From assembly GCF_037042905.1 (NCBI RefSeq), contig NC_087247.1, positions 45,756,001-45,820,000 on the forward strand: DNA of 64,000 bases, given 5' to 3'. Positions 25,489 to 63,861 of this stretch are shown piece after piece. Each line of letters starts with the position of its first letter. Position 1 is the first letter of the stretch. The stretch comes from Lytechinus pictus (lineage: Eukaryota). Below the pieces are notes generated by a model. That model did no database searches and was not told the DNA's origin. It saw only the letters and a program-made list of their open reading frames with translations. A program made the translations under genes and the position numbers.

Positions 25489-28400
25489 CTAAACCAAACT
25501 GTAAGCATATTCAATGGCAGCATTAATAAAGTGGCGCCAGAATCGGTAAGGGAACTTCCACAATGGTGGCTTTGACCATTGGAAAGTTCCACGAGATGGG
25601 AGGCTCGGAAGTTTTGGTTTTCGGGCCCCTTGCTTCCATCTCTGGTATACCATGCCAGCGAAAAGTATCACGGGGAATAGGAAAGCTAGCACACCTCCTG
25701 CGCGGTTCATTCTTACCAGGGTATAAATGAGACCAACAGTCAATGTGGATAGAATCGCTTTCCAATACTTGTCATCTCTGAATACCTGAGGACCCTTCCC
25801 GCGGTCATGGTATACCCTGCAGATGGCAGGTACAAAGAGGGAAACAAAGAAATAGTATGCAACCACCTCAACGGTACGATACAGAAACGGTTTGATATAT
25901 CGCCAGAAGATAATTAACAGTAATAAGCACACGGCTAGACCGCCAAGAATTTTAGGATCACTCAAATCTACTTCAAATCCATGAACTCTTACGATGCGTT
26001 TAGGCCCCCTGCTCTGAGCCTGAACGTTGCACTGGCGCACGAAGACTTCAAGTTGTTCACGGTCACCTTTGTCCATGTCAACTTGCTTGTCCATGTTGCC
26101 GCATATTATGGCCCGGTGGCTACACTCGAAAGTTGTTGGTTGCTTGTCACGGAAACTCTCCATGTGACTACTTTTGATCTTCGCATGCTGGTCTGCAGTC
26201 GAAGAGCCGGCAGATTTCATGGGCCAAGGGAAGTCATGAGCGATGACAAACACATTGCTTTTCCCTGTTGGAGAATATTGGGAAAACATATGTTGTTCAT
26301 TCTAGATTCAGATTAATTGATTGAAAATTACTATGATATTGACATCTTTTAGGAAAAAATCTTCAGATAACACTGTATGTTTTGATGTATTATATTGACA
26401 GTGGCACTAAATTCTCAATCCTCTCATCATTAACCAATTTCACCAATCGGCACTCCAGCCATAGATAAAGTAGGCCCATTATTAGCATACATATTGCATG
26501 AGTATGTTCAGGATATCAAAGTTTGGCAATAAATACGCAACCAAAGTCGTTAGCGAAACATCCTCGAGTCACATAAGTTTGAGTTTTTTAATTCGCAATT
26601 TAGCCCCTGGAATCTTAGCATGTAAATTGTTATATTTTCTGGATTATGAAAATTTTATGTGAGTAACAAGATGATTCTTATGGAACATTGGTTTGTGCAT
26701 GAAAATAAATAAAATCAATCAGTCAATTGTAAAGCTAGTAACTATAGCACTTATGATTTCTATTTCAAGCTTTTAAATTTCTAGTTGCCCTGTTACGAAA
26801 TTGAATTAGGAAATTTATACCCTGAATACACCAGTGAAAGTAGACTGTATGATCATCATTATCATAAGAGACATTTACGAGGAAAGTGATATTTCCATAC
26901 CAAATACTTGTTTGACATGAGGCAAGAACTTGTCATAGAGTGCATCCATGACGTCTGTGATTGCAAAACGACGATTGTTGATAGAATGACAGACTATCAC
27001 ACCATCCAGTCCTTCACTTGAAAGCCGAAAACTGTCTAGATCATTGTATGGTAGCTGAATGAATTTGACTGTTGTGTTTTTCATATTAGAAACCATTGTG
27101 ATGAAAGCCTTGATGTTGGACTTTGATGCTGACGAACAGATGGCTACAGCCTTTTCTCTCTCTTTTCCGGTTGGATTGGCCATTATCTACAAAAAATGAA
27201 AAAATAAAAATAAGCAAAAGATAAAAAAAAAAAAAAAAACCAACAACAAAGGAACAAAGCAATTCAAACAAAAAATCCCAAAAGAAACTTAAATGACCGA
27301 AATCACAGGAATCATTGCTTATCTGATCATTAGTAAAGTAATCAGCAAAACATGCACGACACCATTTAATGTACAAACGAAAGTGAGCACAATGAATAAT
27401 GTATACCCATTCCTTGAACATTTCGTAAGACTATAACACAATAGGAAGAACGAGACATGTATTATGATTATGAATAATAAAATGATAATAGTAACACAAG
27501 TAACATAATAATAATAACAATAATATTAATAATGATAATAATAAAAAATAATAATAATGATAATAACATGACAAACATGATTATGGCAAAAATTACAGCA
27601 ATTATGATAATTTTGGTTGCAAAGTTACGAAATTGAATAAGGAAGTTTATACCCTGAATACACTAGTGAAAATAGACTATATTATCATCTTTATTATCAT
27701 AAGAAACAACCACATGGAAAGCTTTAAAATATTTTGGAAATTTATCCACACTGTGCTACACTCAACCCAGGTGAATGAACGGGTACCCGGTATAGGTAAG
27801 AAATTCATCGAATGCGCAGCTAAAGCCATGCATGCATGGTAATAATAATAGCAGCGCTTGTGTCATCGGGCAACAAGGACTTTATAAATCATCATCATTA
27901 TCATCATCATCGTTATTATCAATTATGACCATATTGCACTTCTATTCATAAGTAGAATAACAATATACATGATATAGTAGTGATAATAACGATGGATTAT
28001 AGGCTTAATGCACATATCACTTTTACACCGACTGACCGAAGCATACAACATAACAGTTCTAATTAGGATAAAACTTATAAAAGGTGACAGAGATACTACT
28101 GGGAATTTTTTACCGGGCGTGTATACAATATAATGTTGCCACTCGACATATTTTTTTTTAGAATCACGGACAACGTATAGGCCTACAGTTAAACACATGA
28201 TTATTAATACCCATAGGGAAGTAGCTGCTTTTGTATATAATTCGTTATGAGAATATATAAATATCATTTTGTTCGCACCAAATAGCCAAAGCCCAAACGC
28301 CACACAAATAAAGTATTAGGCAATACATATTAGCTTCTACATTCGTTTTGTCTTTAGGCCTGCAATTATCTAAAATGTAAGTTAAACATCATGTCATGTG

Positions 28401-28615
28401 CCTCTTCTTCTGGCTAATATAGATAAGACATCTTCAAAAAGATTATATATAGGCCTATTCATTGAATTGGATTCCATTTCCAAATTCCAATCATACACAC
28501 CAATACTAGAAATGCAGACAAGGAAGCAATTAATCTCATCACTGATCTGACACTCTTTTCCAGTGCATGGATATCATTTTTTTCCGCCGCTGCATAGAAT
28601 TCATATACTCACCAT
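25489..28615 (-). CDS. Uncharacterised family paralogue A: alpha/beta (TIR/Rossmann-like) domain + ~4 TM helices, ~354 aa
   Basis: Exon 1 supplies only ATG (28615-28613, then gtgagt). Exon 2 is 27186-26901 (IMANPTG..AVAICSS..DGVIVCHSINNRRFAITDVMDALYDKFLPHV, phase-1 donor). Exon 3 is 26264-25489 (GKSNVFVIAHDFPWPM.. plus four hydrophobic segments). The splices join in frame. Confidence 0.85.
27737..27920 (+). mobile_element. Truncated SINE body in intron 1 of paralogue A
   Basis: aaatttatccacactgtgctacactcaacccaggtgaatgaacgggtacc matches the SINE body. Confidence 0.7.
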
Positions 28616-28802
28616 TTATTTAATATATTCCGTCCTTCAGAGAATTTCAGATATCAATTGCCCAGTGATCAACTGATGACGGTATATCACCAGTTACGTT
28701 GTGTGGTCATGTCTCCTTGGTATGATCTTCAATAACAAGCAAAAGGCGAGCGTGCACGTATCCAGCTCCGTAATGAAGCCGCTCGATGTCAACGAGGTCA
28801 CC

Positions 28803-28826
28803 GGGGAATCCCCATTGGGTATCCCC
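28803..28826 (-). promoter_or_regulatory. Tandem NF-kB/Rel-type sites upstream of paralogue A
   Basis: GGGGAATCCCC (28803-28813; GGGGATTCCCC on the gene strand) plus kB-like GGGTATCCCC (28817-28826), ~190 bp upstream of the ATG. Confidence 0.6.
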
Positions 28827-29170
28827 GCTTCGAAAGTCTTAATTCTAAGGCTTGTTTGTAAGAATTCACGATAAGAGCGAGAGCTGAAAATTTTAGACAT
28901 TCAGACCAGAAAAATGAACATTTTAGGGACTGTTTTTAGGAATTAACAAAGAGCAGACATATCTCACCAATTCACTAGGGCGAACGTAAGCACGGACTGG
29001 AAGCATGTCACTACATAAAACAATAATAAGTGCGAGGAAATATTTTTGGTGTATATTGACTTGAAACGGATTTTTTTTAGTACAACAGGATTATATATCT
29101 CATTAAAAACAGACAATGCGAGCACCAGGAATGATGAACACACAGGCCCTATGTTTCATAAAGTTATGAA

Positions 29171-29357
29171 NNNNNNNNNNNNNNNNNNNNNNNNNNNNNN
29201 NNNNNNNNNNNNNNNNNNNNNNNNNNNNNNNNNNNNNNNNNNNNNNNNNNNNNNNNNNNNNNNNNNNNNNNNNNNNNNNNNNNNNNNNNNNNNNNNNNNN
29301 NNNNNNNNNNNNNNNNNNNNNNNNNNNNNNNNNNNNNNNNNNNNNNNNNNNNNNNNN
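29171..29357. other. Assembly gap
   Basis: Run of N. Confidence 1.
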
Positions 29358-32251: not shown

Positions 32252-34743
32252 CTACATGCTGCACACATTGTTAATCAGAAGATAGATAAAGTAAGTTACT
32301 GCTACCATAATAACCCCAAATCCACATTTCGTTATGAGTTGAGATGCCTGATCTTTAATGTAACAATGGTATAATATGCTAATCAATGATATTATGAAGA
32401 TTGATACCCCAGCAGTCCCCAAACTACGGTACAGTTTGATAGTCAATACAACCACAAGGAACGTCCCTGCTAAGATTACCATCAATAGTTGCATCAGAAA
32501 CATTCTGAACAATCTGACGTGGCTGGCCCTCTTGGAAGCTTCTGCGGATGCTGACTGCATCTGACACTGTCTCACAAAGTCTTCAAGTTGTGTCCACTCT
32601 GCTTCATCCATGTCCACCTGGTTGTCCAATCTACCACAGACCAATAACTTATGAGGACAATCACCATGCTCATGATCAAAGGTTGAGGATAGTTTGCTCT
32701 GGAAGCTCTTCGTATAAGCACCCTTAATCGTAGCATGATCCTCCAGAGACGAGTCGGATGGTCCCATAGGGAAATCATGAACAATAATACAGACATTAGT
32801 TGCGCCTGCATACAGAATGTAAAAAAGTACAATTTCAACCAGGTTTGACTACTTGAAATAAAATGTAATACAGTATACCAATTCAAAATTATTCATCCAA
32901 GAATGGCTACTTCATCCATCTACCAGTCAAATAGTATACTAGTCAAAGATAAATTCATCGGTACTAATTTTTAGAAACATATAATTCTTTTTTAGAATCC
33001 CACAATTCATATCGATGACTTTTGTAACCGTCAACCTCCATACCCAAATTTATAATCCATCAAACGAGAGATGAAAGAGAAGGAGATCAGGGTACCAAAT
33101 ATAGATGAAAGACTTCTTAATTCGTTAACATACAGAAAACGACGCACATCCCCACACACCCCAACAATTTTTTTGCATTTTTTTTATTACCAGAGTTTTT
33201 CGTGAATGTGAGCAGGAACTTGTCGAATAGAATGTCCACAACATCATCCACTGCTAAGTGACAAGTGCTGACAGAATGACAGACTATTACACCATCAAAT
33301 CCTGAAAGATGATCGAATCCAAGATCATTGTCAGGCAGTTCTATAACGTCTACATTGGTCAGACTTGAAACCTTGGTTATGAAATGTTTTATTTTAGACC
33401 TTACTGACTAACAGACGGCTATGATTGTACCTGGTGCCATGGCGCATCATCTGGACACAGAAAACACAATGAAGATCATTCATTTTGTGGAATTTCGATA
33501 AAAAATCAAATTACTAACAAAAGCTAAGTTTGAATACAATGTTGACCTACAAAATAACAGAAATGCATCTTCTTAAAGCTCACAAAGAAACAAGATTAGA
33601 TTCGATCCGTACAATTGCCTTTTGGTGCATTTATAAATATATACTTATAAAAAATAACACAGGAAAAGATTGTCGAGAATTTGATTTGGAATATTTTTTT
33701 GAAGAAGAAATATGTAAACACGTGTAATGTGATTTTAAATGTTCAATTATGAAATATAATACATTCCCATGGTGGGTTTAAGGATAAAAAAAAAATTACT
33801 AATAAGACATTAAGAATTTAAAAAGGTGTCTACTAGATCCTTTAATTTTGATTTAAAAGTACAACAAAAATCCCCCGGAGTCAGCTCATTGTACGTGTGT
33901 ATAGTTATTTATTCCACGCGTTTAGGCCCATCAATCAGATATGATTATGTACACCCATCTGGGAATGACGCTTAACTTCACCATGCGAAAGACATAACCA
34001 TGGTAACCGGGGCTTGAAAATTGAACCTATATGCAATTCGGTAACCCCTTCCCCCCCATGACGCTTGATTACCCAGTGAAAAAAATCACCCCCACATGCA
34101 ATTAAGTCAATGTCCGATTTTTTTTAACGTATTGATTCACAACAAAGTCGTGTTTTGTTGATATCTTGTTACCTGTCACGTCATGCAACCATAATTTTTT
34201 TACTGAAATTCCTACACGATTATAGATATTTTGATGCATTTGATCAAAACCAGATGAGTGAACAAAAGTGCTATAATAGGTATAGAAATCGAGCAACAGG
34301 TCACATCATTCACGTTCTGGCACATATATATGGATTACAGTCAAAGAATAATTGTCTCATGGCCGCATGTATTATTGTTTACCCAAATATTTCAAACTTT
34401 AATAGATCACACATTTCATATGTGATTCAAATTAAAACTCAGAGTATGAAATACGGATTTTACACCGGTGAAAATGTGAGTGGAATGATCAAATTACGTT
34501 TAAAGTTTATTCTAAAATGAAACAATTCTCATTATGTGAAATATGTAATGAATTCCAATTCACAGTAGATGAGATAAAAATGAGGCTAATTTAACTAGCC
34601 TCATTATTAATAACAACCAATTAGTCAACAAATCGATAACATTGTGTCATAAGCAAAAGTTGAAGTAGGTACAGGTTCCATCATGATGACATTTCTGTAT
34701 TTACAACCTAATATTGATAGAAATATTGTTCTGTACTTACCAT
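32252..34743 (-). pseudogene. Paralogue B of the same family, probably disrupted
   Basis: ATG|gtaagt at 34743-34741. Exon 2 (33450-33191) reads MAPGTIIAVC*SVRSKIKHFITKV..DGVIVCHSVSTCHLAVDDVVDILFDKF, with an in-frame TAG at 33410-33408, and the exon-1 ATG is out of frame with it. Exon 3 (32805-32252) is open: GATNVCIIVHDFPMG.. plus 3 TM segments. Confidence 0.75.
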
Positions 34744-37159: not shown

Positions 37160-40100
37160 ATATTCATTATCAGGTTCCGGTTGTAGGATTTCAATTCTCC
37201 AATCATCACCTCCATCATCATTGTCATCATTGTCATCATTTTCATCATCATCATCATAATCACCAACAGCAAATTCGATTTCACATTCATCCTTTATTAG
37301 TTTTTTAAACTTCATCCTCTCTTCATCTCATCACCATTACTACCACCATCTTGCTGTTATGACACAGAAAATTTACACACAAATCACATATCATACCAAT
37401 AATCTTAATTTTTTTGGTAATATCAAATTATCCTCCTGAGTAATGACATGGACATTTTTTCTATTTTCAATACAAACAATATATCATCTGATAATAACTA
37501 TTACTCAACCGAAGATTTTACTTCTAGATTTAGAGACATGGAACATAAATTCAGTTTGCTTCATATTAATGCTCGTAGTTTGAATAAAAATTTTGAGTCA
37601 TTGGAATCATTACTTTTCACTTTAAACAATTTCAAATTTTCCATTATTGGTGTCACGGAAACATGGCTTCACAATACTTCACCTAACATATTCAGTTTGG
37701 AAAACTATAATCTCATTAGGCGTGACCGGGAAGATCAAAGAGGAGGAGGTGTAGCATTTTACATCAGTGAACATTTATAATTCAAAGTAAGGAAAGAAAT
37801 ATCATTAAAACAGAGTGAAACTTTATTCATAGAAATCACGAAGCCAAAAAGCAAAACTATAATTATTGGATTGATTTATAGACCCCCTCATGATAAAGTA
37901 AATTTATTTTGTGAAGACCTTGAAACGTGCTTTCATACTATTAGAAAAGAAGAGAAACAAATATATTTAATGGGTGATTTTAACATCAACCTGTTATCCC
38001 AAAATAATGAACATGATTTATTCCTACACACAATGCATTCATTTGGCGATTATCCCCATATAGATAAACCGACCAGAATTGATAGCCATTCATCAACACT
38101 TATCGACAACATTTTTTCAAATATATTAAACAGAGATATTACCAGCGGATTGTTAATATCTGATATATCGGATAATTTGCCGGTTTTTTCATTTTGCGAT
38201 AATGATATTCCAAAAGAAAATATACTCAAATCGACAATGTATAGAAAATAACATTGAATCGTTTAAAAGGGATCTTGCTATTGAAGAATGGTTGGATGTA
38301 TTTCATGAGTCTAATTTAAACATTGCATACACAAATTTTAACAATAAATTGCAGACATTTTACGAGAAAATTTTTCCTCTGATACCACTGGTCAAAAGAA
38401 CGAAGGCAAAAATGCCATGGATTTCTAAAGCAATTTTAAGATCCATACGTACCCGAAAACAAAAATAAATACAAAACTTACAGAAATAGACTAACCAATA
38501 CAATTCGAGCTTCTCGCAAATTATTTTATTCCGAGAAGCTTTACAAAGTCAAATCAAACATGAAAGCAACATGGGAGATTATAAATGATTTGATTGGCAA
38601 GAAACCCAAAATATTACCCAAAGATAATTTCACAGCTCATGATGTTGCGATAAATTCAGAAGATGTAGCTGATACCTTTAATTCCTTTTTTGTTAACTTA
38701 GGACCCTCATTGGCAAACAAACTTGACAGAACTGATGAAAATTTTGGAAAATTTCTTCCCACACCCATTAACTCTTCTTTATTCTTTAACCCAACAAATG
38801 TTCAGGAATTAATTGAAATAACAAAAAATCTCAAATCAAGCAAATCACAGGGAATTGATAGAATTGGTACTTTCCTTCTTAAGCAGATCATACACTATAT
38901 TGCCTCTCCTTTGTGTCATATTTTTAATCTGTCGATTAGCACCGGAATATGTCCTGATTCCCTAAAAATTGCAAAGGTAAATCCTGTTTTAAAAAAGACA
39001 ATCCGCATGAAATAACAAATTACAGGCCTATTTCTATTCTTCCCAGCATTTCCAAAATATTAGAGAAGATTATTTACAATAGACTTTATAAGTTTCTAGA
39101 TACTTTTCATTTTCTAAATTCTAACCAATATGGATTCAGGAAAGGACATTCGACTGATCAGGCTTTAATACAAATATACGATAAAATCACAAATGCAATG
39201 ACAAAAAAAGAACATATAATAGGCGTATTCATGGACTTAAGCAAAGCCTTTGACACTCTTGACCACCAGATATTACTTAAAAAACTTGAAAATTTTGGAA
39301 TTCGCGGAATTACACTATCTTGGTTTAAGAGTTATTTGTCCAATAGAAAACAATATGTAATTCACAATAATATTCCTTCTGATTTTCAGTTAATACAATG
39401 CGGAGTTCCACAAGGATCAATCCTAGGCCCCTTGCTTTTTTTAAAATATATATCAATGATTTGACTTCTGTAACACCTTTATTATCATATGTATTATTTG
39501 CAGATGACACCAACATTTTTTGTTCACATAATAGCTTAGAAACTTTAGTAGATATAATTAACCGTGAATTACCAAAACTATCTTTGTGGTTTAAGTGTAA
39601 TAAGCTTTCACTCAACATAGATAGAACAAACTTTATATATTTCAAGCATACACACTCACATGATAACGAATTTCCTTACAATATAAACATAGACAATACT
39701 CCTCTCAAAAGGAAAAGAGAAACAAAGTTTTTAGGTGTCACAATAGATGAAAATTTAAATTGGAATGAACATGTACGTTGTATAACTACTAGTATTTCTA
39801 GAAACGTTGGTATACTTTACAAAATGAAAAACATAATTCCACATACAACTCTTGTCATACTCTACAATTCATTAATATTGTCTTATATATCATATTGCAA
39901 CATAGTTTGGGCAACATGTGCAAAAACTAAAATTAATACAATATACTTATTACAGAAAAAAGCAATTCGAATCTGTACTGATTCCCAATATTTATCACAC
40001 ACAAATCCATTATTCCATAAACTAAAGACTCTAACAGTATTTGACATAAATACTCTTCAAAATTTACTACTTATGTTTAATTACGTAAATAACATGCTCC

Positions 40101-40802
40101 CACCTTCATTCCACAATTTTTATACTCTGAATACATCTATTCATTCTTACCCTACCCGTAACTCTTCATATTTCCATTTAATCAACCCTAAATTGCTTAT
40201 TGCGCAGAGATCCATAAGACACCATGGTCCAGATTTGTGGAACTCTCTACCAGAGCCTGTAAAACAATCTTCGTCTCTTCACTCATTTAAGGCAAACGTT
40301 AAATCTATGTTATTATCAGAATATTTGAAGTAAAATTTCTGTGTCATATCCTTTTTATCGTGAATTTATTCCTCCTTCGATTTAGTCATTACCAATATCT
40401 TCATCATGACCACCATCATCTCCATGGCCTTCATCATAATCATCATCATCAACATCATCATATCACCGTCACCCTCAGTTTTATCATCTTCATCTTCATA
40501 CTATAATATTGCATGAAGTCATGTTTCGTATTTGAAAATGTATGCCCATTCTGCTTTATAAATGTATTAATTTATTCAATTAGTATAAGTTTGGGATTGT
40601 AATTTTTTTCAAGCAATCTGTTTATGATGACAATCCTTCTCCTGCAAATTGTGAATATCATATAGTTAATCATTTTTGTCTGAAATTATCTTTTTAATAC
40701 TCTTTATTTATGATTCATGCCAAAAATGCTAGCATATTATGTTATGAAAAATGTATTATACGAATGTTATGGATGCAGAAGAAAACAATAAATCAAATCA
40801 AA
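37160..40802 (+). mobile_element. Non-LTR retrotransposon (CR1/L2-group LINE); near-complete but disrupted APE+RT ORF2 at 37448-40333
   Basis: APE motifs HINARSL, GVTETWL, GGGVAFY, IYRPP, GDFNINLL, PTRI..LIDNIF, SDN (normally SDH). RT motifs DLSKAFD, GVPQGSILGPLLF, YIND, FADDT. A stop at 37778-37780 and several frameshifts. 3' tail aataaatcaaatcaaa. The 5' boundary is approximate. Confidence 0.9.
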
Positions 40803-41502: not shown

Positions 41503-42894
41503 CTACGTAATCTTGATGGGAAACCCTGAAATGTTGCGACAAGACTGAGGCCACCATTCTTTCCAATCCGGCAGGATTGGTTTGTTGATCTTTCCCGCTC
41601 TTGCTGCTTTTTCGTCATCTAATAGTCTACTGACGACCTGGCACATATTCTGAGGCATAAAAAGCCATGATTCGTTTGTGAATTCGACGGATCCTTGTTT
41701 CTTCCATTCAAAGAACTTATTGTAGAGATTGTCATTCTGATCAAGAATGGTTACATAGTCCGCAAGATCTTGGATCGTTTCGAAGTCCTCGACATGGATG
41801 AATGAATCCGGTGGAACGACTGCCTCGTAGTCCGCTCGAGGAGGTCCAAACACAATAGGGACTAGGTCGTTTTTGAAGGCATTATTCCACAGTTTTTCGG
41901 TGATGTAGTCTCGACAAGCGCAGTTTTCTAAAGCGAGATAGAACTTGAACTGTCGTAGTACACCATTGCATGTTTCGGAGAAGTTATCTACACGTGGAGG
42001 ACAAGCTCCTTGCTCCCCGCACTTGCCGTACATGCCCACGTCAAGATATTTGGATAGCTCTTTGACAAACCCAGTCCTATTCCAATGCAGATAGATGGAC
42101 TGACAGTTAGAGGACAACCATGCGACCTGTCGTTTCCGACCAGCAGCCCAATTCCTTGTTTCGTTTGAACTAATCGATGGTTTACTGGTGTCATAGTAAG
42201 CAAAGCTAGCATATAAGTGGGACTCCCTGAAACGGTATGACATTATGTAATCATAAGCGCTGTTGATATAGTCTTTGGGTGGAAGGACTCCTTTTTGTGT
42301 ATTTAGTGGACTTTCGTGGGAGTAAAATATCAATTTTTGTCCTTTACGTTTATGACTCAATATTTTAGTCCAATTCCAGAGTGTCCTGGGTAAGAGCAAG
42401 ACGGCATCACTATCTTTTAATGTCTCATAATTGGCGTCGATCACCAAATTGATACCGCATGCTAGTCCTGGACAGGGCTCGATTCCACGTTGTCGGTGTT
42501 CAGTTCCCCATATTTGGACTTGTTTAACACAATGAGGTCTAGGAAGAGCTTCACGAATCACAAGTTTGGTGTCAATCAACTTTTGTTGACCACCGTCTTC
42601 TGAAGACCTGGTATTCGGTTGGATCAAAGAGGCCGGTTGGTCTACACAAAATTTGAGCTCAGATTTATACCCTTCTTGTTCCCTTTCATGTGCTCCCCTC
42701 TCTTGCATTATCCTCAAAATATCTCCGTAATCTTGAAGGAGCCTAGTACATTCCTCTTTGCTAACAAGACGAACCTTTGATCGATCACTCCCACTGGAAG
42801 ATCCTCTGATCCAATGGCAATGGTAGGAGATCCAGCAGAATGCTAAGATACCCCAAGATGTAATGACATAGAGTAAGAGACGCTTGGGGGACAT
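41503..42894 (-). CDS. Alpha-1,3/4-fucosyltransferase (CAZy GT10), type II membrane protein, 463 aa, single coding exon
   Basis: N-terminal TM (LLLYVITSWGILAFCWI) and stem, then GT10 motifs: HESP, MSYR, VAWLSSNC, FKFYLALENCACRDYITEKLWNN, VPIVFG, PPDSFIHVEDF, YNKFFEW. Acceptor tttcag| at 42907/42906 just before ATG 42894; candidate 5' UTR donor at 48837/48836. Confidence 0.93.
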   Translation of the reverse strand: MSPKRLLLYVITSWGILAFCWISYHCHWIRGSSSGSDRSKVRLVSKEECTRLLQDYGDILRIMQERGAHEREQEGYKSELKFCVDQPASLIQPNTRSSEDGGQQKLIDTKLVIREALPRPHCVKQVQIWGTEHRQRGIEPCPGLACGINLVIDANYETLKDSDAVLLLPRTLWNWTKILSHKRKGQKLIFYSHESPLNTQKGVLPPKDYINSAYDYIMSYRFRESHLYASFAYYDTSKPSISSNETRNWAAGRKRQVAWLSSNCQSIYLHWNRTGFVKELSKYLDVGMYGKCGEQGACPPRVDNFSETCNGVLRQFKFYLALENCACRDYITEKLWNNAFKNDLVPIVFGPPRADYEAVVPPDSFIHVEDFETIQDLADYVTILDQNDNLYNKFFEWKKQGSVEFTNESWLFMPQNMCQVVSRLLDDEKAARAGKINKPILPDWKEWWPQSCRNISGFPIKIT

Positions 42895-47421: not shown

Positions 47422-47801
47422 TACCCCTTTCATAAACCCAATTATGCGGCTAATAGCAGCATAATTTGGTCGTAAAATCGGAGGAGGATCAGAGTTATCC
47501 GCATTATTTTGATGCTGCAATTATCCGCATAATAGCAGCATCGGGACAAGATTTTGAGTTTATGAACGCATTTCCAAATAATGCGGATAATTGCCATGGT
47601 GCGGTCACAAGGTCACCCTTTTCCAACACAACCGCATCGGAGGGGGCGTGTCCAGTTGTCGTGACGATTATCCGCCTTTTTCAGGACGGGCGCTCGTAAA
47701 AATAATGCGGATAATTTTCGGAGTTTGTGAACGCATTTTTTATTGAATTATCCGCATTACTATTAGGCGGCTAATTGGAGGATAGGTTTATGAAAGGGGT
47801 A
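47422..47801. mobile_element. PIF/Harbinger-like MITE
   Basis: TIR taccccttt(c)ataaacc / ggtttatgaaaggggta, 3-bp TSD TGA, internal repeated tgcggataat/attatccgca. Confidence 0.7.
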
Positions 47802-50230
47802 TGAGAGAGAGAGAGAGGGGGGGGGGGGTTAGAGGGTGAATGTGGATACTTGTGTGAGACATATGTTGACGGTGTATATGTTTTGCACGTTGTGGGTGCG
47901 TGGATGTGTATGAGCATAGACCCTGCATGTTGTGAGGTATATGTTGAAGAAAATGTGGGTGTGCGGTGCGTGTGAGTTTGTATTTGCTCACACCTCATCC
48001 CCTTCTATCTCTCTTCATTTTCACCATGCCTTGTATGATCGAATGACCATCGACCAAGCAGATTTTTGTGTGTATTTTCATCAATTATAATCAGGCTTGT
48101 CATCTACTCATTCGTAAATTTTATAGGTTGAATCCATTTGTTATATTCTATTGACTGGTTATAATTTCTCTCTTCATAAACGAGATAATTTTGTTTGCGA
48201 GTAATACAAATATTTGATGTTCAGAGTAAAATGACTTGAACCCGCAGTGATACTGAAAGACAAGTAATATAAAATGTGAGCATGGTGAATAATAATTGCA
48301 TTTAGAAAAAATTAGTGGGACAAAATTTGTATTATCCACGCGTGATGTACTAGGCAGTATTTTGGCAACATTTAGAAAATTTCTTATACAATTATAAGCA
48401 AAATTGTTGTCACATAATTTCTTTGGAGAATCTATTTAAGCTTACTTATCCCATTTGCCACACACTACACGACATATTATGTGAAGAACTGATTTTTTTA
48501 TCAGTATTGACTTTATGGAACGTGAGTCAGTTAGTTTTTTATTAGTAAAATTTCATTAACGTGGCAAGAATAATTTGTTTTCAAACCGAATTATGGCCAC
48601 ATTTAAATGATATCGAACAAAACTACTCCAGAAGAAAGCTCATTTACCAAAAAAATCAAAGATTCGTGTAAAATGGGACAATATACATGATTATATGGCA
48701 AGTGAAGGTACATTTCTAGCGTTATCTCTCCAAGTAACTAAGTGCAATTTATTATGTAGAGGAAATAAGAGATACAGGATAATTTATTTGCTTAGATATT
48801 TATTTCACGAACGCAATGAAAATGCCCTTGACTTACCTGTATATTTCTCCGAGCCATTATCTGCTAATAATATTTGGGATAGTATCTGATGCTCATCCTT
48901 CGTCCATCATGTTCTTCAACACACTGGCAGATTCCTAAGTACTTGTGAGCACACACCGTGTGCGGATACACCATAATACATGTACATGAATGGATGAATG
49001 GTAGCCTATGAATTGTTAGTGTATAGTGTATCTACTTTGAGCATAATTATCATCCAAAGAAGGCATCTTGCAGACTATTCGTGACATAAGAAGGAATTCT
49101 CCTCCATGCATCTTTTAATCCGGCCATGACAGCTGCAGATTGCCCATGGAGACAAAGCAGGAATATACGCATTTCAGTCTGAAGTCATACACCACTGTGC
49201 CACCCCTCCTCTCGATATTTTGTTGACGTCCTGTTTTCTTTTTATTTCCTCCATTTTTGCATCAGATTTGGCGACCTCCCGCCACTGCGCGGCATGCGTC
49301 AATTTTGTTTCGAGTTCAAGAGTACTTTGCTCTCATGTCATCTATCCTCTATCTATCCCTCTCTTTCTTCTTGCCTCCTCTCCCTGGCTCCCCTTACCCC
49401 CTTATACTGTTTCATAGTAGCCGAACATAATCTACGACACCCATTTTGCATGATGTTGAGAAATCAGCCCAATAATTCTATATGTGAAATACTAATATCA
49501 TTCCTTTTACTTTCGACGACTCTGTATGACCTGGAAATTTTTTTGAAGTTCAATATTTCTTTTATTGATTCATGTTCATCATAATATAAGGAAGGAACTA
49601 CTGGATACCTCAGCAACCATGGCTAAATGCTTTCATCAGTTTTTTTCTGCACAATAATCAATATGTAGCAAAAGCTATTTTGTATAAATTAATACGGCTT
49701 AAGACAAGTAAAATACAACATTTCATTGGTTTGCCTATACTACGAGGAATATATCTATGCCCAATGGCAGAGTCGTAATGAACCCCCCCCCCCCATACAT
49801 ATAATATATATTTAGGGGGGGGGGGGCGTTTTGGGGAAAATTTATTAAAAGTTGTGAGCTAATGAAACAAGCAAGCAAAAAGATCCAGGTATCATTTTAA
49901 ATCTGATTGTATGATTAGAAGAAAATAAACTCATTATATTCATCCGTTTTAATGATTTTGGCTGCCATGCTCAAACGGGTGGCATCAATGGCGTACATAT
50001 GGGGGGGGGGGGCTTTGGGCGCTTGCCCCCTTTTTAAGACAGAAATCTTTTTTTTTTTTGGGGGGGGGGGTAGATTTTGGCATACTTTTTCAGAAAATAA
50101 TATCATATGTTACCTTTTTCCTTTCCATTTCTCTTTTATTTTGGTCTTGAAACTCACCCAAACCCCCTCCTCATACGCTAGTGCCAAATGGTATGTCGTA
50201 ATGTCGTAATATATATATATATATATATAT

Positions 50231-52093: not shown

Positions 52094-55000
52094 ATGGACG
52101 AGGTGAAGATTTGATTTCTTTTCTCCTTTGCTCTGTTTTTAAATTGTTTTAATATAACTACTGTTCACGAGTGTTTATCTCAAGTCATGTATGCGAATGT
52201 ACGCTTACTGACTCGACTCTCCGAACACCACATTGTTGGAATGTTGGCCTACATGTTGTATGCACTAGAATTTGCTATATCAAAGTGCAGGTGCTCGACA
52301 AATAATACTCCACCAATAATGCACATTGTTATCTTAACATAATAAGCCTTCATGTTGTCGCGTATGCTGGGCTTGATCAACCCCTTTCAAAATGAAACCA
52401 GGGAATCGTATGCTATAATAAAATGATATCTAGGCCTGCATAATCACGATGTACTATATCTAGATTTTTATCTGTATTTCGAATAGAGCAAAGTGAGGTT
52501 TTTGACGATCAAGCCCGCACAAAAAGGGGTAAATTGTAGGTTTAGGGACTACATGATATAATATAATACACACACCTTTTACACCCCCCCCCTTACACCC
52601 TCGCACCCCAAGCACCAAGACATTGCATGTATGCATTATAACAGACATTCATCAAGATCATCATGTTCGAATGCAGGTACAGAATTAAGAAAGAAGATGA
52701 GTATTGAAAGCAGAGAATAGAAGAGAATATAAGGGAAAATTGAGGACACGCCACAGAAGGGTTTGGCGTAATAATGATTATCCGTTAATAATAAAACAAT
52801 GAGTTTGGGTCGGAATGTTGTAACCTACATTATCATGAGTACGTCTACGTAAAGAGAGAAGAGAAACAAAGATGACATGCAGCATATGAGATCTACACCG
52901 TCAATCTGTACCATTTCCAAAAAATCTGTTGATTTTTTCCCGAACTATGCAAAGTTTGGGAACTGAATCGTTTAATTCTATACATTATTCTCATTTTTTA
53001 ATAGAATATCAGTCAAGGTGTGAGGGAGAATGTGACAGTTGGCATCTGTACGTCAGCGTTGGAGTCCAATATCGAGGCTCTTTTAAACAAAGTCAAAAGT
53101 CTCCCAAATGTAGCAGTTAAATTTATTCAGCTACCATACAATGATCTAGACAGCTTTCGGCTTTCAAGTGAAGGACTTGATGGTGTGATCATCTGTCATT
53201 CTATCAACAATCGTCGTTTTGCAATCACAGATGTAAGAGATGCACTCTATGACAAGTTCTTGCCTCATGTGAAAGAAGTGTTTGGTAAGGGAAAAAGTCA
53301 ACATACTTTTCTTATCTGAATGGGATTTATTTATTTATTTTTATTTTATTTTTGTTTTATTTTTATTTTTTATCTATTTATTAATTAGTTTATTAATCAA
53401 TTAATTAATTTATTTTATTTATTTATTTATTTTTGTTGTTTTTTTTTTGGGGGGGGTGGACATTTAAGAAATAAAAACGAGATCAAACATATTAGAGTGC
53501 ACATACGAATTTACGTATATGACCACTGTGACCCCATATACAAAATCTAATCAGATCATCTTCACTCCTATAATACTTGGACCAAGTTTGAAGTTGATCC
53601 AGCAACGACATTAGTTTATATTGCGAGAACGGGACAGGTGGATGGACGACCTGGAAACATCATGTTTCCAACATGAATCTAAATGATATAGGGAGGTTTA
53701 TATGATGTTTAAGGCTTAGTGTATATGGCCTGATAACCACACGTGTCCAACAAGTTCAGAAATGCAAACTATATGGCGTAATATATAAATATGCTACCCT
53801 AAATGTCGGGAGAAAAGCAACCCCTATATAATTATACACAACAAAAAAAGTAAGTCCCCCTAAATCAATTTGCTGTAACTTTTGAACGGAATTAATTTGA
53901 GATATGATATTTCGTAGGTGGTTTTATGCACTCATTAAGCAACTCCTGGGGAAAAATGAGATTGATCAATTGAGTCATGCATGAGTAATTAAAGATTGAA
54001 TTAAAAATGACAATTTTTGAAAGTCAAAAGAGTCGTTTTTCAAATTGTGCAAATACAAATTTGGGCAAATATTGTTTTTAGGTGAAATTTATGGTGTTAA
54101 TGCTGTTGTACTATCCATCATTTAGACACTCCACACACAATTTTGATATCGTATGTTCATGGTTGAGTGAGCACAATATTGCAGGGGCCGCGGAAGCGGG
54201 GGGGGGGGGGGCTCAGCCCCCCACTTTTTTCCAAAAGCATGTACAAAAATGTAAAAATGACCACACGATTGTGAGTTTTTGCATGGTCAGCCCCCCCCCC
54301 CCACTTTGAAAACTGTTCCGCGGCCCCTGTATTGTGACGTATCATCATAGGGGTTTATGGTAGTATCCTCTACAACTTGTTAGATCATGTTAAAATTTGA
54401 AAATGTTGGTGGCTCCCCCAATTATACGCCCCTCTCCCATTTTAAAATTCTGGATCCACCACTGACTTGTCCATGAATTAAACTGATCATGAGAGATTGT
54501 TAGGAAAAGAATACTTTAATGCAGTAAAAAAAGTATTCATTCCTAAGTTTTCGAATGTGCTCGCTCAACCATGAAAAGGTTCAAAGTTCGGAAAGTGTGT
54601 GGTGATAGAAATGATGGATGATAAAAACAATAGCAATTAAATTCACATTTGAAACCGAAATTGCCCCCCCCCCCAATATTCACTTTATTACCCTTTAAAA
54701 TGAGGCTGTGACATTGAAAATACCAATTTTCCCACTTTGATGCGTGCTCACTCATCCATAAATAAACAAATCGATTTCATTTTTGCACAGAATTCTGCCC
54801 ATAGGTTGATAAAGATTACTGCCAAAGGACATTGCTAAAGACAGCCTTGAAAATATGTTCCCTCATATTGAATAAGGGGTTACTTATTCTTAAACATATG
54901 CACCCATAATGTACACAAGTCTATGAGAGAGGAAGTCAAAATTTTAACAAATATGAGGGTTTGTTTCATGGACGGTTTTTGTTACTTCTGCCAACAGTTA

Positions 55001-58000
55001 TTTCATGAAACTTCGCACATGGCTTCAGCCGGGCTTCAGAGTAACACTATCCAAAAGGCGCGCACACCAAAATAACCATTCGATACGGCACAGAATGGGG
55101 CCAATGCCTTGAACTTTCTTCTCATTTGCATAATTTTCGAACATTGTGTGCTCACTGAGGCATTTAACATCGGGATTTTCATAAAAATCAAATCAAATGA
55201 ACCATGCAAGGAGGTTTGTGACTGATTTCCATAGTTGCAAATTGCACTTTTGCCAATAACGTGAAAAAGAGCTAATCACATTCCACATGTTCATTCAAGT
55301 GTGACTGTTTAATTAAACGCCTTTGAATCATTAAAGCATGTTAATTGGTCATGAACATAACGAAAAAGTTGAGAAAAAATCATTTTCAGTTACCAAAATG
55401 AAACAATACTTGCCTATGATATTTGAAAATCGTATATTTTGTTTTCAATAAATGTTCATTGAACCGTGAAACAATGAATATTGTCGAAGATACTCTTCCC
55501 AAAAATAACTGTCATCATATTCTATCATTTTTATTTTATTTTATTTTTTTCAATTTTTTCCCCCTTCCACAGGGTTCTTTATTTTCAAAAAGGTATAGTT
55601 ACATGGTATAAACATTTACAATTTTCCGACAAACATTAAATAAACATGGTATATACATAATTCATAATAATAATACATATACATGTAGTCAAACTGACTT
55701 ATTGTACAATCAAGTTGTCACAGCCAAAGCAAATTTGGCAAGAAAAAGGGGTCTGATACATATTACTAAGAAATAAACACTGGTAATAATTATGTTAATG
55801 TGACAGATTGCCAGCTTGTTCGAAAAAGTTTCTGAAATGAAACCATTTATTTCTGAACTTATTTGCTCTGATATTTGTTTCATAAATATATTTTTCCATT
55901 TCATAATAAAATTTTAAAGCCGACATAATTGAGGTAAATAAAGGTAACTCTTTTTTCAATTTGGCTAAGTATATCTCTTTTCTTACGATCATCATGACAC
56001 AGTTAAGAGCATTATTATTTGTACCACAAAATCCAAACAATTTGTTTTCATTCGTTAATACGATCACCTCTCGAGTATTTTGAAATATCCATGATTCTAT
56101 TCTCGACCATATTACATTAGAGTGAGTACAAAGGCAAAATATATGCATAATTGTTTCATCATTATCAATACAAAAAGTACATTTCATATTTGTTATTGTA
56201 CCAAATTTCAACAGAGAATCTTTCATATACAATATTTTGTTTAAAATTTTAATTTGAAACCATCTTAAGTTTATATCCATTGTTGCCTGAAAAGGAATCA
56301 AACAGAAAGCAACCCAAAGGTCATCTCGAAAACCTAACAGATCTTTCCAGCTGACAAGAGCCTTACATTCTTCAACTTTAAAGTTAAGAAAAGAGCGATA
56401 TATATTTGAGCAACCTACACGTGTTTTCACAAGGTGCAGAGCTTCAGGAATGATTGGTTCAATAGATTTAGTAATTATATGCGAATCTGTGGGAAAACCA
56501 GACCTAATTGCGTCACAAAGACCGTAATACTGTAGAAAATTGGTTTGTATACCATAAGCACGTTGGAATTCAAAGTATGGAAAGAAGGTACCATCTGTTC
56601 TAAGAATGTCATTAACAAAATGTTTTCCTCGTAAATCCCAAGACCTGAAATAGACTGGTTTGTTATTTATTTTTATTCGATGATTATTCCAGAGAGGCTG
56701 ACAGGCTATGTCATCAGTTAACAATTCAAGCAAGTCTGAGTAAGCAAGTAAAACTTCTTTCCAAAATGGATTGTAATTCGTGTCTGCCAATGTTCTGTTA
56801 TAATGTGAGCCCATGTACAAGTGAAACTTGTGTGTTGGATTTAAGAAAACATTGAACATATGAAAAGTAAAACTGTTTTGAGAATCATTTAAAAAATCGT
56901 CTTATCCATGAAATCTTCAGAGATTTAGCATGTATGAAAATATCTATCATTTTTTATTGATAGAAATGTATTAAAAAAATCAAATTATAGCAAATTTGGA
57001 CTTGTGTTTATTCAACCGTGAAATTTAGCCAAAAAAAATTGTATCGTCTTTTAGAATGTACCTTTTACAAGCCTTCTGACTATTTTTCATGATGAGAATG
57101 TGGAATTAGTTCCAATAAAATGGAATCAAAGTCATGATATTTGGCTTGTGACTTTTGAAAAGTGACATTTTTGCCTTCTGATGGTGCTCACTGAAGCATG
57201 ACGTAAAATACGTCCATAACATTTACTCAGAGGGTACCTTATAAAATTACCTACACGCTCATGTAAACTCGCATTGGTTCGGAAATTATTGATGTTTGTT
57301 TAAGGGGGGACTTACTTTTTTGTTGTGTATAGTTGCGCAAACATTGAAATCTAAATCCTGTAAACGAACATTATGTTAAAATGCAACCCTAAATGGCATA
57401 ATCTGCATAACCAAATAAGCAAAGCTAAATGCCGTGATTTTGTGAAAAATGGCTACCCTAAGTGGCGTTGTCATGACAGCGAATGGTGCTGAAAATCAGC
57501 CAGTTCGAAAAATACGTCGACGAATCCTTGATAGATCGGGACCCTTTCTGGCGCCTTTTAAACATTAATAAGTTTTGCTCTTTTCAACGGTGCCGTTATT
57601 GTTACGTTAAATCTCATGTTTGAGTAAGAATTGCCATGAGAGTAAGAGGTACAAAATTCTAATTTTACTTCTCATTGTTATATATACTGAATTCCAGGAA
57701 AAGACAACGTCTGTGTTATTGCACATGACTTTCCATGGCCAATGGGACCAAGAGCCGATGATCATGCTATGATCAAAGGAACCTACATGGATCGCTTTCG
57801 GAGCAAACAATTCACAACCTTCGAGTGTTCCAAACTGGCCATCATCAGTGGTAAGCTGGACACTCAGATGGACATGGATCAAGAGGATTTGGAACAGTTT
57901 CAAGAATTCATCTATCAATGTTGGACCCATCCACCATATCATCACATGTCCCACAATATTCCACCGCCTAATCCTGACCCCAATAATTATGTTAAGTTGA

Positions 58001-58620
58001 CAGATGTCTTGTTCTATACCATAGGGGGTGGAATGTTTGCATATACAATATACCAGTTTCTCCCTGCTGAAGGAGCTTCTCCTCCTTTAGAGAGCAGTGC
58101 TCCATCTAGAGGAACAGCAGGTTTTGTTCTAAGGCTTGTTCGTTGTCCTTTCAAGATCATGTTCAGCATTGTTAATTTGATTCCTGCATGGGCAATTTCT
58201 AATGATGCCAGCCAGTCTCTCTGGGCTTTATTCAAGCGTGATGTTCTCGTGAAGACCATTGAGATGCCCAGGTCCTCCTTGGGTATCTTCGGTCTAGTAC
58301 CTTGGATTTCTCTCATGCCACTTCGACTGGTTTTCTATTCATCTAAGTTTGTCACTACCTGGGTCATGAGATGTTTCTGGGGCTTTTCAAAATATTGTTT
58401 GGTAACAGCAGGTGCATACGTCATGATACCTGTGACTGTCAAACTGTGCTCCATGGCGGTAGATCGAAACCCAACACAAGGAAGCAACAGGACGGTGTCA
58501 GATGGTGAGAACCGTAATAATTGGTCTGTGGCACCTTGGCGAAAATTACCATTCTTATTTTGGCGTCATGTTTTTGATCTGTTCAATCAGCTTGTCTTCA
58601 ATAAGTTCAATAACGGTTAA
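52094..58620 (+). CDS. Paralogue C of the same family, ~403 aa, with a hydrophobic/amphipathic C-terminal region
   Basis: Exon 1 is 52094-52102 (MDE|gtgaag). Exon 2 is 53005-53284 (NISQGVRENVTVGICTSA..HSINNRRFAITDVRDALYDKF, phase 1). Exon 3 is 57698-58620 (GKDNVCVIAHDFPWPM..FWRHVF..stop). All joins are in frame. Confidence 0.85.
54182..54329. mobile_element. Small CAGG-terminal MITE
   Basis: TIR caggggccgcggaa / ttccgcggcccctg, 5-bp TSD tattg. Confidence 0.75.
55560..56960 (-). mobile_element. Tx1/L1-clade LINE 3' fragment (ORF2 C-terminus with CCHC zinc knuckle)
   Basis: ORF 55795-56859: FWKEVL, PLWNN..IKI, TNFLQYYGL, RWFQIKIL, CTFC..ETIMHIFCLC. Boundaries are approximate. Confidence 0.82.
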
Positions 58621-60678: not shown

Positions 60679-60841
60679 AATTAGAAAGTCAAAAAGGGGC
60701 CTAAGCTTTCGATCCTAGCAGAATTGGATTCTGCTAGGATCTTTCTGCTAGGATCGAAAGCTTAGGCCCCTTTTTGACTTTCTAATTTACTCCATTGGCT
60801 CTCTTTTATTAGATAAGCAGTTTTTAGCAGCTTCTTTTTGC
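60679..60841. mobile_element. Short fold-back insertion with a 13-bp TSD (Penelope-like end)
   Basis: cacataaggacct is duplicated at 60666-60678 and 60842-60854; inside is a ~45-bp perfect inverted repeat. Confidence 0.65.
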
Positions 60842-62390: not shown

Positions 62391-62860
62391 CTTTTTTTCG
62401 GGGGGGGGGTCCCAAACAACCTTTGCTTTTAATAAAAAAATGCCTATTTGGTAAAATGGCCTTTTACGGATTAAAGTAATTGTATTTCCATGCTTGGCCA
62501 CCTCTTGATCAGTGCGGGGGGGGGGGGCAAGATAAAGGATTAATTTGATTTTCGTATTATCCCTCTTTTTTCTTCTTTTTTTTTCTTTCTGTATTATATT
62601 TCTTAACTTTTCTTTCAGTGAAGAGAACGTAGGAATAGACTAAAATATAGTTGAAGTGATTTATGAATCTTATGTACATGTTAATATGTTTTTGTTCTGT
62701 GATTTTACTGAAAACTTGATGTATTGTAGATGTTGATGTTATGGGAATAATCAATAAACGAATACTTTAGAACAACAGCAACAACATTTTTAGGGAAGCC
62801 ACTGAAGTCAGATGTTAGATGTTTCGCCTTTTTCTTAGACTGAACCAAGACTATGCCAAC

Positions 62861-62871
62861 GGGGATTCCCC
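62861..62871 (+). promoter_or_regulatory. NF-kB/Rel-type site upstream of paralogue D
   Basis: GGGGATTCCCC 120 bp before the exon-1 donor, followed by TGACCTCG as in the copy A promoter. Confidence 0.6.
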
Positions 62872-63578
62872 ATCGCGCTGAATGACCTCGACGTTTCAAA
62901 GCGTTCGGCTGGTCATAATGCACGTATACGTGTTGTCGAGCGTGACACGCTTTGAACACAATTAGAATAACCCGGTGGGACAAAATACGAGGTGAGTGTC
63001 TATAATCTAGGCTACCATTGCGAGTTGCTAAGTGGCATATATATTTCAATTAATTTTCAGAAGTAGGCTCTATTTGATCTTTTGATTTCATATTAGAGAT
63101 TTCGGCGCGAAATGAAGAAAATGTGATCATCGTGCATGGAGGCATGGCAGAGAATTCGCCAATAATATCCGCCATCTGATGAATCATAAATGCACATAAT
63201 AATAATAACTATTTTGTAAAATCTATGTACCAAAATTACAGGATATACAAAGTGAATCTATATTTAAAGTTGATAATTACTTAGAATTATAAGGTCAGAA
63301 AAACATGGGCATACTTTTAAATGGGTTGAATCATCATTTGCATTTTTAAAATAATTTATGCTACGTTGTGTATATGTTGTGTATAATAGATTTTTATCAT
63401 CAAATAATTTTTTCTAATTAGACTTGAAGATGATGATGGATCTTAACTTTTTAATGTAAATGGAAGAACGATGATATTCCAATCAAAATTTACCTATCCA
63501 TATGAGCTATTCTTGGAATGCGTTCTGAATATAACCTAGAATAGATCCTTATTATTTGCTATCATTATCTATTGATAG

Positions 63579-63861
63579 ATGGAGAGTCAATCATCAAAGC
63601 CGAGACAGATTACGATAGGCATCTGTACATCAGCGTTAAAGTCCAACATCGAGGCTTTTATAGAGAAAGTCAAAAGTCTCCCCAATGTAGCAGTTAAATT
63701 TATTCAGCTACCATACAATGATTTAGACAGTTTTCGGCTTTCAAGTGAAGGACTGGATGGTGTGATAGTCTGTCATTCTATCAACAATCGTCGTTTTGCA
63801 ATCACAGACGTCATGGATGCACTCTATGACAAGTTCTTGCCTCATGTTCAAAATAAAATTG
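63579..63861 (+). CDS. Paralogue D, first coding exon; the gene continues beyond the window
   Basis: ag|ATG at 63579; reads MESQSSKPRQITIGICTSALKSNIEAF..HSINNRRFAITDVMDALYDKFLPHVQNKIG, with phase-1 donor g|gtaagt at 63861/2. A probable non-coding exon 1 ends at 62991 (acgag|gtgagt). Confidence 0.85.

Follow-up and report, generated by a model that had tools for sequence, protein, structure and literature searches.

What kind of protein is encoded by a cluster of four related genes, here called A to D, that lies in chromosomal DNA of the urchin Lytechinus pictus (contig C3:45,756,001-45,820,000; this whole stretch of 64,000 nucleotides [nt] is referred to below as the window)? An initial annotation, made from the DNA letters, had proposed an unnamed TIR-like or Rossmann-like domain that is fused to variable membrane tails and represents a candidate immune system. 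We find that the genes belong to a large, transcribed and undescribed family, whose common domain is predicted to adopt a flavodoxin-like fold with a strongly conserved edge. The best reading of these data is, in our view, a ligand-binding or enzymatic module of this fold that is anchored to membranes, to which we assign a probability of roughly 0.45.

Four paralogues share one gene architecture

Searching the window with the exon translations (tblastn) revealed exactly four paralogues (E 1e-14 to 1e-68), with no copy in the first 25 kb. Together with two more genes, located up to 54 kb downstream of the window genes, they form a local cluster of six. Genes A and D are intact, as are the two coding exons observed for C, and B is interrupted by a premature stop. 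A phase-1 GT..AG intron is common to all four (G/KSNV in A, G/ATNV in B, G/KDNV in C and G/KENV in D, with the slash marking the intron). The description of four paralogues with the same structure is therefore accurate with respect to copy number and the G/[KA]xNV intron, but the very short first exon that had been ascribed to all of them could be shown only for A, and B is interrupted at codon 11. Likewise, all sequence motifs listed at the outset are present in A, C and D, but B is degenerate, its core motif having decayed to HSVSTCHLAVDDV. The tail of gene D indeed lies outside the window, the next exon starting 189 nt past the window end.

The domain is predicted to be flavodoxin-like, with conserved residues at one edge of the sheet

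The N-terminal domain encoded by each gene comprises about 170 residues, is split by the conserved intron and lacks a signal peptide. AlphaFold2, run with a 48-sequence alignment, yielded a model with a predicted local distance difference test score (pLDDT) of 91.9 and a predicted template modeling score (pTM) of 0.87. The model comprises, in order, strand 13-19, helix 23-34, strand 39-45, strand 63-69, helix 88-96, strand 101-106, helix 120-143, strand 147-150 and helix 162-173. Based on the DSSP string of this model, with the strand order not read from the coordinates, the high-confidence prediction for the domain is a five-stranded (beta-alpha)5 three-layer sandwich belonging to the flavodoxin-like class, in agreement with the alternating beta/alpha organization that had been deduced from the translations.

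The model could be superposed almost completely on CheY-like receivers (root-mean-square deviation 2.8-3.3 Å). Structure searches retrieved family members from AlphaFold DB and the ESM Atlas with template modeling (TM) scores of 0.6-0.78 and, beyond the family, only a broad tie. GTPases and pseudo-GTPases gave structure scores of 10.3 (Gtr2), 9.6 (IRGQ), 9.5 (EngB), 9.1 (CENP-M) and 8.4 (GIMAP7); the TIR domains of RPS4 and SIGIRR gave 8.7 and 8.4, respectively, and a CAP12/Pycsar TIR cluster was found at TM 0.54/0.56. TIR structures were thus no better matched than CheY receivers or GTPases.

We evaluated conservation over 107 non-redundant domains, using the residue numbering of gene A. A near-invariant set of polar residues emerged, consisting of H68 (98%), S/T69 (100%), T78 (94%), D/N79 (98%), Y85 (98%), D107 (97%) and Q138 (97%), alongside V80 (91%), L89 (99%) and G97 (96%). 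Of the residues that the initial annotation had considered invariant, H, S, TD, D and YD are maintained family-wide, whereas the RR pair (R73/R74, about 75-80%; G-R in frogs) and D82 (79%) are less strictly kept. A signature of the form H-[ST]-x3-[RG][RG]-x2-I-T-D-V-x-D-[AS]-L-Y is unique to the family. The conserved residues map to the C-terminal ends of strands 3 and 4, to the 18-residue loop that follows strand 3, and to the region before strand 5. Flavodoxin-like and Rossmann-like domains hold phosphorylated ligands at that sheet edge. The placement of the conserved residues at the ligand-binding edge of the modeled fold supports the idea that they may form an active site or a binding site.

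The family is large and spans echinoids, frogs and one bacterium

A search with the family profile detected about 45 loci for the N-terminal exon in the L. pictus genome and a similar number for the second exon. These loci form tandem clusters, in both orientations, on C3, C10, C18, C9, C12, C8, C5 and C2, and nearly all of them are split at one profile position; the same intron position after the Gly codon recurs in genes of Diadema setosum and S. purpuratus. In a region of C9 (C9:4,528,125-4,685,928) we also noted five long open reading frames (ORFs; 1135-1164 residues) with weak matches to AIG1/GIMAP-type GTPases; two family loci, at C9:4.89-4.92 Mb, lie at a distance of about 200 kb.

When 1.84 billion cluster representatives at 50% identity were searched exhaustively with HMMER, 161 proteins were obtained at E<=1e-3, 31 of them at E<=1e-30. 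A profile search yielded 85 more-or-less full-length relatives, every one of which is named "uncharacterized" and none of which carries a precomputed Pfam domain. The named members that we looked up came only from echinoids (Strongylocentrotus, two Lytechinus species and two Diadema species), anuran frogs (thirteen species, including Xenopus, Bombina and Lithobates) and a bacterium, Endozoicomonas elysicola, with a single member. The frog proteins, in which the domain often occurs as 2-6 tandem copies, bear sequences such as HTKNRGRINITDVHDSLY and HTKKHGRLNITDVTDSLY, which confirm an amphibian motif that had been cited in the initial annotation.

Pfam scans of the exons, of the RefSeq protein of gene A (P0001; see below) and of 48 members at permissive thresholds produced nothing recurrent or above threshold, nor did phmmer and profile searches against sequences in the Protein Data Bank. 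No relevant match to the family was obtained with the PADLOC defence models, no Pfam match in the non-domain parts of eight long members, and no mention of the family in the literature when queried by gene identifiers and keywords. Two weak leads were rejected, namely a match to the CEP76 peptidase-like domain (E 0.006), seen in only one of 48 members and of the wrong fold, and AAA_16 matches in frog proteins, considered as a possible sign of a STAND ATPase, which fell below threshold and overlapped the strand-4 region of the family domain. The family is real and large, and the domain is unnamed, as originally stated.

The genes are transcribed and spliced

The 266-residue ORF of gene A is 100% identical to a RefSeq protein (LOC129256279; P0001, 354 residues). 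Contigs from two sequencing runs cover the gene A exons and none of the intron, indicating that both runs behave as transcriptomes. In both runs, 26263 is joined to 26900; the 636 nt skipped are bounded by CT..AC on the + strand, corresponding to GT..AG on the gene A strand. At the other end of the gene, one RNA-derived contig joins 28613 to 27186. As the sequence at this site reads ...aaataaATG/gtgagt (the slash marking the exon end), the first exon of gene A supplies only the start codon, in agreement with the MIM- start of P0001. Stranded raw RNA reads covered the gene A exons at low depth (0.3-2), with the first mate on the + strand, as fits an mRNA from the minus strand.

For gene D, the loose end of a contig from one run (X1) carries the junction ...QNKIG/KENVC, and a full-length RefSeq protein of 349 residues is available (P0164), of which residues 1-94 correspond to the exon in the window. 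For gene C, 64-89% of the 31-mers of the last exon are present in the transcriptome-like runs. Since gene C has no in-frame ATG and a TAG just before the acceptor, it requires an upstream exon with an ATG; this first exon was not located, and a BLAST search of the window with the first exon of A, seeking those of C and D, revealed no similarity. In the annotated proteins (P0164 for gene D and, for gene B, the earlier B-like RefSeq model P0031), the start codon is an ATG that belongs to the main exon. P0031 (LOC129256277), an earlier L. pictus RefSeq protein that is 95/91% identical to gene B, has a Ser at the position of the TAG codon. Given the in-frame TAG and the decayed core motif, compared to this Ser, the copy of gene B in the present assembly is either a pseudogene or a null allele.

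Two further patches of RNA coverage were observed around gene A. Within its first intron, 38 nt (27737-27774) showed a depth of about 1000 in contigs and about 300 in raw reads, the latter mostly with the first mate on the - strand. These reads carry a fixed A>G at 27758, and nearly all continue into unlike sequence on both sides; the signal therefore reflects brief identity to some abundant transcript or repeat that originates elsewhere, and not local expression. Upstream of the mapped first exon, 28729-29100 is covered by run X1 contigs at a depth of 45-140, with one contig extending toward the nearby assembly gap that starts at 29171. This coverage may represent a longer 5'-untranslated region (5'UTR) of A, an alternative first exon of A, another transcript or pieces of a repeat.

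Evidence of exon-restricted gene conversion and purifying selection

In A, C, D and the two genes just outside the window, the first coding exon contains a core of 156 nt with 94-100% identity. Beyond this core, identity within the exon is only 55-74%, and the introns cannot be aligned. Core identity of B and of all other genomic copies is at most 82%. In addition, first-exon dS (synonymous substitutions per site) is 0.35-0.52, far below that of the second exon, which is saturated for A versus C. This combination of a near-identical core, a diverged exon remainder, unalignable introns and low first-exon dS is best explained by gene conversion restricted to the exon, and the cluster provides a clean example of that process. 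A second kind of mosaic is seen between species. A gene of L. variegatus (P0005, LOC121410726; also P0152 and P0153) has a first coding exon 95% identical to that of A and a last exon 83% identical to that of C; in L. pictus, A and C reside on opposite strands, 30 kb apart. As judged from these identities, the mosaic points to a rearrangement or an exon exchange within the cluster between the sister species.

The ratio of non-synonymous to synonymous substitutions (dN/dS) on the domain, 0.1-0.5, indicates purifying selection. It also bears on the idea that the genes are carried along by a transposable element or form part of one, which could be entertained in view of fragments of long interspersed nuclear elements (LINEs) between the genes and in the intron of C, as well as P2RX7_C-type and weak DDE_3 matches in some frog members. 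We regard this idea as highly improbable, as introns are conserved across echinoids, flanks are unalignable, tails are divergent, dN/dS is below 0.5, the domain region of exon 1 is open and intact in A, C and D, and the units contain neither terminal repeats nor a transposase.

Variable tails, fusions and a bacterial copy

C-terminal to the domain, the proteins carry hydrophobic, fast-evolving tails, in which hydropathy analysis detected three to four membrane-type segments for A, three for B and weaker ones for C. The tails of A, B and C had been described as mutually unrelated. This notion holds for B and C, the only pair compared for B, which lack similarity, but a W.K.P..FWRH motif recurs at the C termini of A and C (E 0.001). 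Moreover, the tails of C and D are homologous (31% identity over about 100 residues, E 2e-7). ESM Atlas look-ups with the domain and with the A tail retrieved only unnamed chordate and echinoderm clusters.

Other members link the domain to different partners. Proteins of L. pictus and Diadema have a PAP2 lipid phosphatase on the N-terminal side of the domain (E 1e-12 and 4e-9), a kinesin motor is fused to it in Xenopus laevis and Discoglossus (E 1e-40 and 1e-47), a P2RX7 C-terminal domain (P2RX7_C) is found in Bombina, and frog proteins contain the tandem arrays mentioned above. An apparent Death-domain fusion was rejected, as the Death-like protein P0155 (21.8 bits, below cut-off) has no family domain; the link comes down to a neighboring gene or to a superseded model, P0156, in which P0155 had been merged with two family domains.

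These fusions are compatible with an ordinary, non-immune regulatory or enzymatic module associated with membranes, acting for instance in lipid-phosphate metabolism or in vesicle or organelle transport, that was expanded in tandem without any role in conflict. That PAP2 recurs in two echinoid genera and kinesin in two frog species argues for such a module, as do the purifying selection, the lack of similarity to defence models and the low depth of the stranded RNA reads. However, at least 45 loci, rapidly diverging tails, degenerate copies and concerted evolution would be unusual for housekeeping enzymes, and the spread among the members looked up (echinoids, anurans and one bacterium) is patchy; we therefore consider this explanation rather unlikely.

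The gene of E. elysicola is present in a single copy, encodes 259 residues and is 36-40% identical to the urchin domain (scaffold 1, L006 8001-12762). A gene of this type was found in one of 201 genomes of the order. It lies beside an unannotatable ORF of 1223 residues in a stretch of low G+C content (0.39-0.42, compared to 0.48-0.50 for most of the sequence on either side). The neighboring genes encode SSF and EamA transporters and an enoyl-CoA hydratase, and the setting is not that of a defence island. The stretch looks like a eukaryote-derived island in a symbiont genome, and the pattern fits acquisition from an animal host rather than an origin in bacterial defence.

Tests of kinship to TIR domains, GTPases and receivers

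We compared the 107-domain family alignment by hhalign with alignments built from genome searches, comprising 10 and later 29 sequences for PF10137, 25 for TIR_2, 3 for ThsB and 5 for urchin Toll-like receptor (TLR) TIR domains, with Response_reg (29) and MMR_HSR1 (28) as controls. The best of all targets was PF10137, with P 0.0018 and a collinear alignment from strand 1 to strand 4. Other targets gave P 0.1 (TIR_2), 0.49 (metazoan TIR), 0.38 (ThsB), 0.36 (MMR_HSR1) and 0.35 (Response_reg). For reference, reversed sequences yielded P 0.06-0.41, comparisons across superfamilies 0.011-0.48, and true TIR pairs 1e-5 to 1e-20 (mostly 1e-5 to 1e-10), except for ThsB versus PF10137 with 0.014.

The PF10137 score might hint at a very divergent TIR domain of the STIR clan that cleaves NAD+ or assembles signaling oligomers. 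Upon enlarging the PF10137 alignment, however, the signal dropped to P 0.0078 with a probability of 5%, close to the negative controls (0.011-0.09). None of the TIR models in Pfam (PF01582, PF13676, PF10137 and PF08937) matched P0001 or any of the 48 members at E<=1-10, and a search of the urchin genome with the PF10137 hidden Markov model (HMM) hit no family locus. One frog member belongs to a UniRef cluster named after the CAP12/Pycsar TIR; this name could not be reproduced, as that protein gave no TIR match. In addition, no equivalent of the catalytic Glu was detected. We take the conserved Glu of the NVxxE motif to be the catalytic Glu of TIR NADases; in the best alignment, this Glu of PF10137 falls in a gap, and D79, D82 and D86 are nearby, with no conserved Glu. 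Given also the tie in structure scores, a divergent TIR domain seems doubtful to us, and the family appears to be TIR-like at the level of the modeled fold only. The original proposal of kinship to TIR or nucleoside 2-deoxyribosyltransferase-like domains is not borne out by these comparisons, in which structure scores tie with those of CheY and GTPases, profile P values of 0.002-0.49 lie within or near the negative controls, and no counterpart of the catalytic Glu was found. Models of the nucleoside 2-deoxyribosyltransferase-like group (PF05014, PF15891) were absent from the Pfam scans, with no dedicated profile-profile test run for them.

A serious rival is an origin from a tail-anchored GTPase of the GIMAP/AIG1-Toc-IRG kind that has lost its P-loop, as in the pseudo-GTPases CENP-M and IRGQ, to serve as a non-catalytic membrane scaffold or adaptor. 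The overall architecture and the longest structural alignments speak for this origin, and the predicted domain has the three-layer organization of a G-domain-like fold. On the other hand, a P-loop (GxxxxGK[ST]) is present in none of the 107 domains, even with a relaxed pattern, the AIG1, Ras and MMR_HSR1 models of Pfam matched none of the 48 members at E<=1, the PF04548 HMM missed all family loci in the genome, and the hhalign comparison with MMR_HSR1 was insignificant. Furthermore, the modeled domain lacks the antiparallel strand 2, and conservation is strongest after strand 3 and not at the P-loop position. We consider derivation from a GTPase unlikely. Concerning receivers, the acidic pocket (DD after strand 1, D after strand 3), the T/S following strand 4 and the K following strand 5 are absent, the corresponding positions holding C/S-S, H-S, H-D and G. 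As far as sequence allows us to say, TIR-like, GTPase-derived and receiver-like forms are the candidates for a deep ancestry of the module.

A proposed membrane-anchored ligand-binding or enzymatic module

Based on the position of the conserved residues at the edge where flavodoxin-like and Rossmann-like domains bind phosphorylated ligands, we suggest that a ligand-binding or hydrolytic module is the most likely function. The domain would act in the cytosol, at the membrane surface, as a module that binds a small ligand of the nucleotide or phosphate type or that hydrolyzes its substrate. Location or output would be supplied by the variable tails or, in other members, by the PAP2 body, the kinesin motor, the P2RX7_C domain or further copies of the family domain in tandem.

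Several observations weigh against this proposal. The clustering of the conserved residues in space is deduced from their secondary-structure positions in the model only, and the conserved surface could equally be a protein-protein interface. The tail of gene C is only weakly hydrophobic, the verified fusions include no classical immune domain, and the names "AIG1-type G", "NB-ARC" and "TIR" attached to entries in AlphaFold DB describe whole entries and could not be reproduced.

A conflict-related role, in innate immunity or cell death, is plausible. The family has expanded in a lineage-specific manner, its tandem clusters contain genes in both orientations, the exon core shows gene conversion, one copy has acquired a premature stop, and a single transfer into an animal-associated bacterium has occurred; all this fits such a role but does not prove it. 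An immune system as first proposed did not find support, considering that PADLOC returned no match, the Death-domain link was confined to a superseded model and the verified fusions are those with PAP2, kinesin and P2RX7_C. Conversely, three outcomes had been named in advance as speaking against the proposal, namely a characterized housekeeping or transposon family, a fold other than alpha/beta, and a lack of spliced transcripts; all were looked for and none was found. A more far-reaching version, which we deem unlikely, sees in the HS...TDV...Y...D...Q domain an unrecognized module of innate immunity in deuterostomes that acts as an enzyme or binds a second messenger. It would be equivalent to TIR in function, owing either to an independent origin or to divergence past recognition, and would be tethered to membranes by fast-evolving tails serving as the output. 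It would be kept diverse and homogenized by gene conversion, and an Endozoicomonas symbiont would have captured it once as a host-mimicking effector.

The family joins echinoids, anuran frogs and an animal-associated bacterium, and is linked to membranes, a lipid phosphatase and kinesin motors. Its definition would provide a new domain for annotation pipelines and, as L. pictus is a genetic model urchin, a tractable target in the search for a new membrane-proximal signaling or enzymatic activity. If the immune reading were true, the family would constitute a new effector class in invertebrate and amphibian immunity.

Features of the window

The positions of the family exons are compiled in Table 1. 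Two assembly gaps are present, at 23151-23408 and between genes A and B; the latter is crossed by no family exon and no real ORF, as judged from the ORFs of the window and tblastn, and the continuity of reading frames across it is therefore irrelevant to the present findings.

Between B and C, an intact, single-exon ORF of 491 residues (41503-42978, - strand) encodes an alpha-1,3-fucosyltransferase of family GT10 (Glyco_transf_10, E 3e-54). Upstream of this gene, 46001-48000 marks the G+C maximum of the window (0.44, compared to about 0.34), which may be a promoter or a CpG-rich region. Decayed non-LTR (long terminal repeat) retrotransposons are found at 37448-40333 (+ strand), with endonuclease and reverse-transcriptase fragments in several frames, and at 55795-56859 (- strand), where an ORF of 354 residues containing zf-RVT lies within the 4.4-kb intron of gene C.

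Table 1. Family exons and related features, in window coordinates
Feature	Position	Strand	Evidence
Gene A, first exon: 5'UTR ending in ATG (28615-28613), then GT donor	28613..28670 (5' end provisional)	-	RNA contig joining this exon to the second
Gene A, second exon: N-terminal half of domain, beta1 to alpha3; motifs ICSS, VKFIQLPYND, DGVIVCHS, NNRRFAITDVMDALYDKF	27186..26901	-	100% match to P0001; exon-only coverage by RNA contigs
Gene A, last coding exon: second half of domain (NVFVIAHDFP, QPTTFECS, IICG) and tail with 3-4 hydrophobic segments, terminal WKFPYRFWRHF, stop	26264..25489	-	Joint 26263->26900 in two runs
Gene B, first coding exon: in-frame TAG at 33410-33408 (codon 11), degenerate core motif	33440..33191	-	Sequence reading; comparison with P0031
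Gene B, second coding exon: remaining domain and three hydrophobic segments	32805..32252	-	Reading and splicing of sequence
Gene C, main N-terminal exon: without in-frame ATG, acceptor directly preceded by TAG (53002-53004)	53005..53284	+	Reading and splicing of sequence
Gene C, last coding exon: second half of domain and long, weakly hydrophobic tail	57698..58620	+	Splicing; 31-mers in transcriptome-like runs
Gene D, first coding exon: ATG at 63579	63579..63861	+	P0164; spliced junction
Gene D, next exon, outside the window	Window-equivalent 64189-64431	+	Family profile match in genome
Exon core, putative gene-conversion tract, 156 nt	A 26915..27070 (-); C 53115-53270; D 63692-63847		94-100% identity
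Assembly gap, intergenic, between A first exon and B 3' end	29171..29357	.	tblastn and ORF placement

Comparison with known systems

Among known systems, TIR domains, especially those of CAP12/Pycsar and PF10137, resemble the family in their five-stranded flavodoxin-like fold, similar size and conservation after strands 2 and 3. They, too, form expanded families, can be repeated in tandem and are placed at the cytosolic end of membrane proteins, and PF10137 gives the best, if weak, profile-profile score. Unlike TIR domains, the family has no Pfam TIR match and a non-significant profile signal, and no counterpart was found for the conserved Glu or the box 1-3 motifs. From GIMAP/AIG1-Toc GTPases and the pseudo-GTPases CENP-M and IRGQ, it differs by the absence of the P-loop and of other G motifs from all 107 domains and by the unmatched AIG1 and MMR_HSR1 profiles. 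From CheY-like receivers and pseudo-receivers, such as the N-terminal domain of CpaE, it is set apart by the missing acidic pocket and Thr/Lys, by its eukaryotic and membrane-tethered context and by an hhalign P of 0.35. Pycsar PycTM and transmembrane effectors of CBASS combine a small alpha/beta domain in the cytosol with a few membrane helices. The family shares this architecture of a small alpha/beta domain plus membrane helices, but it bears no sequence relation to these effectors in PADLOC, and its sole bacterial member sits among transporter genes.

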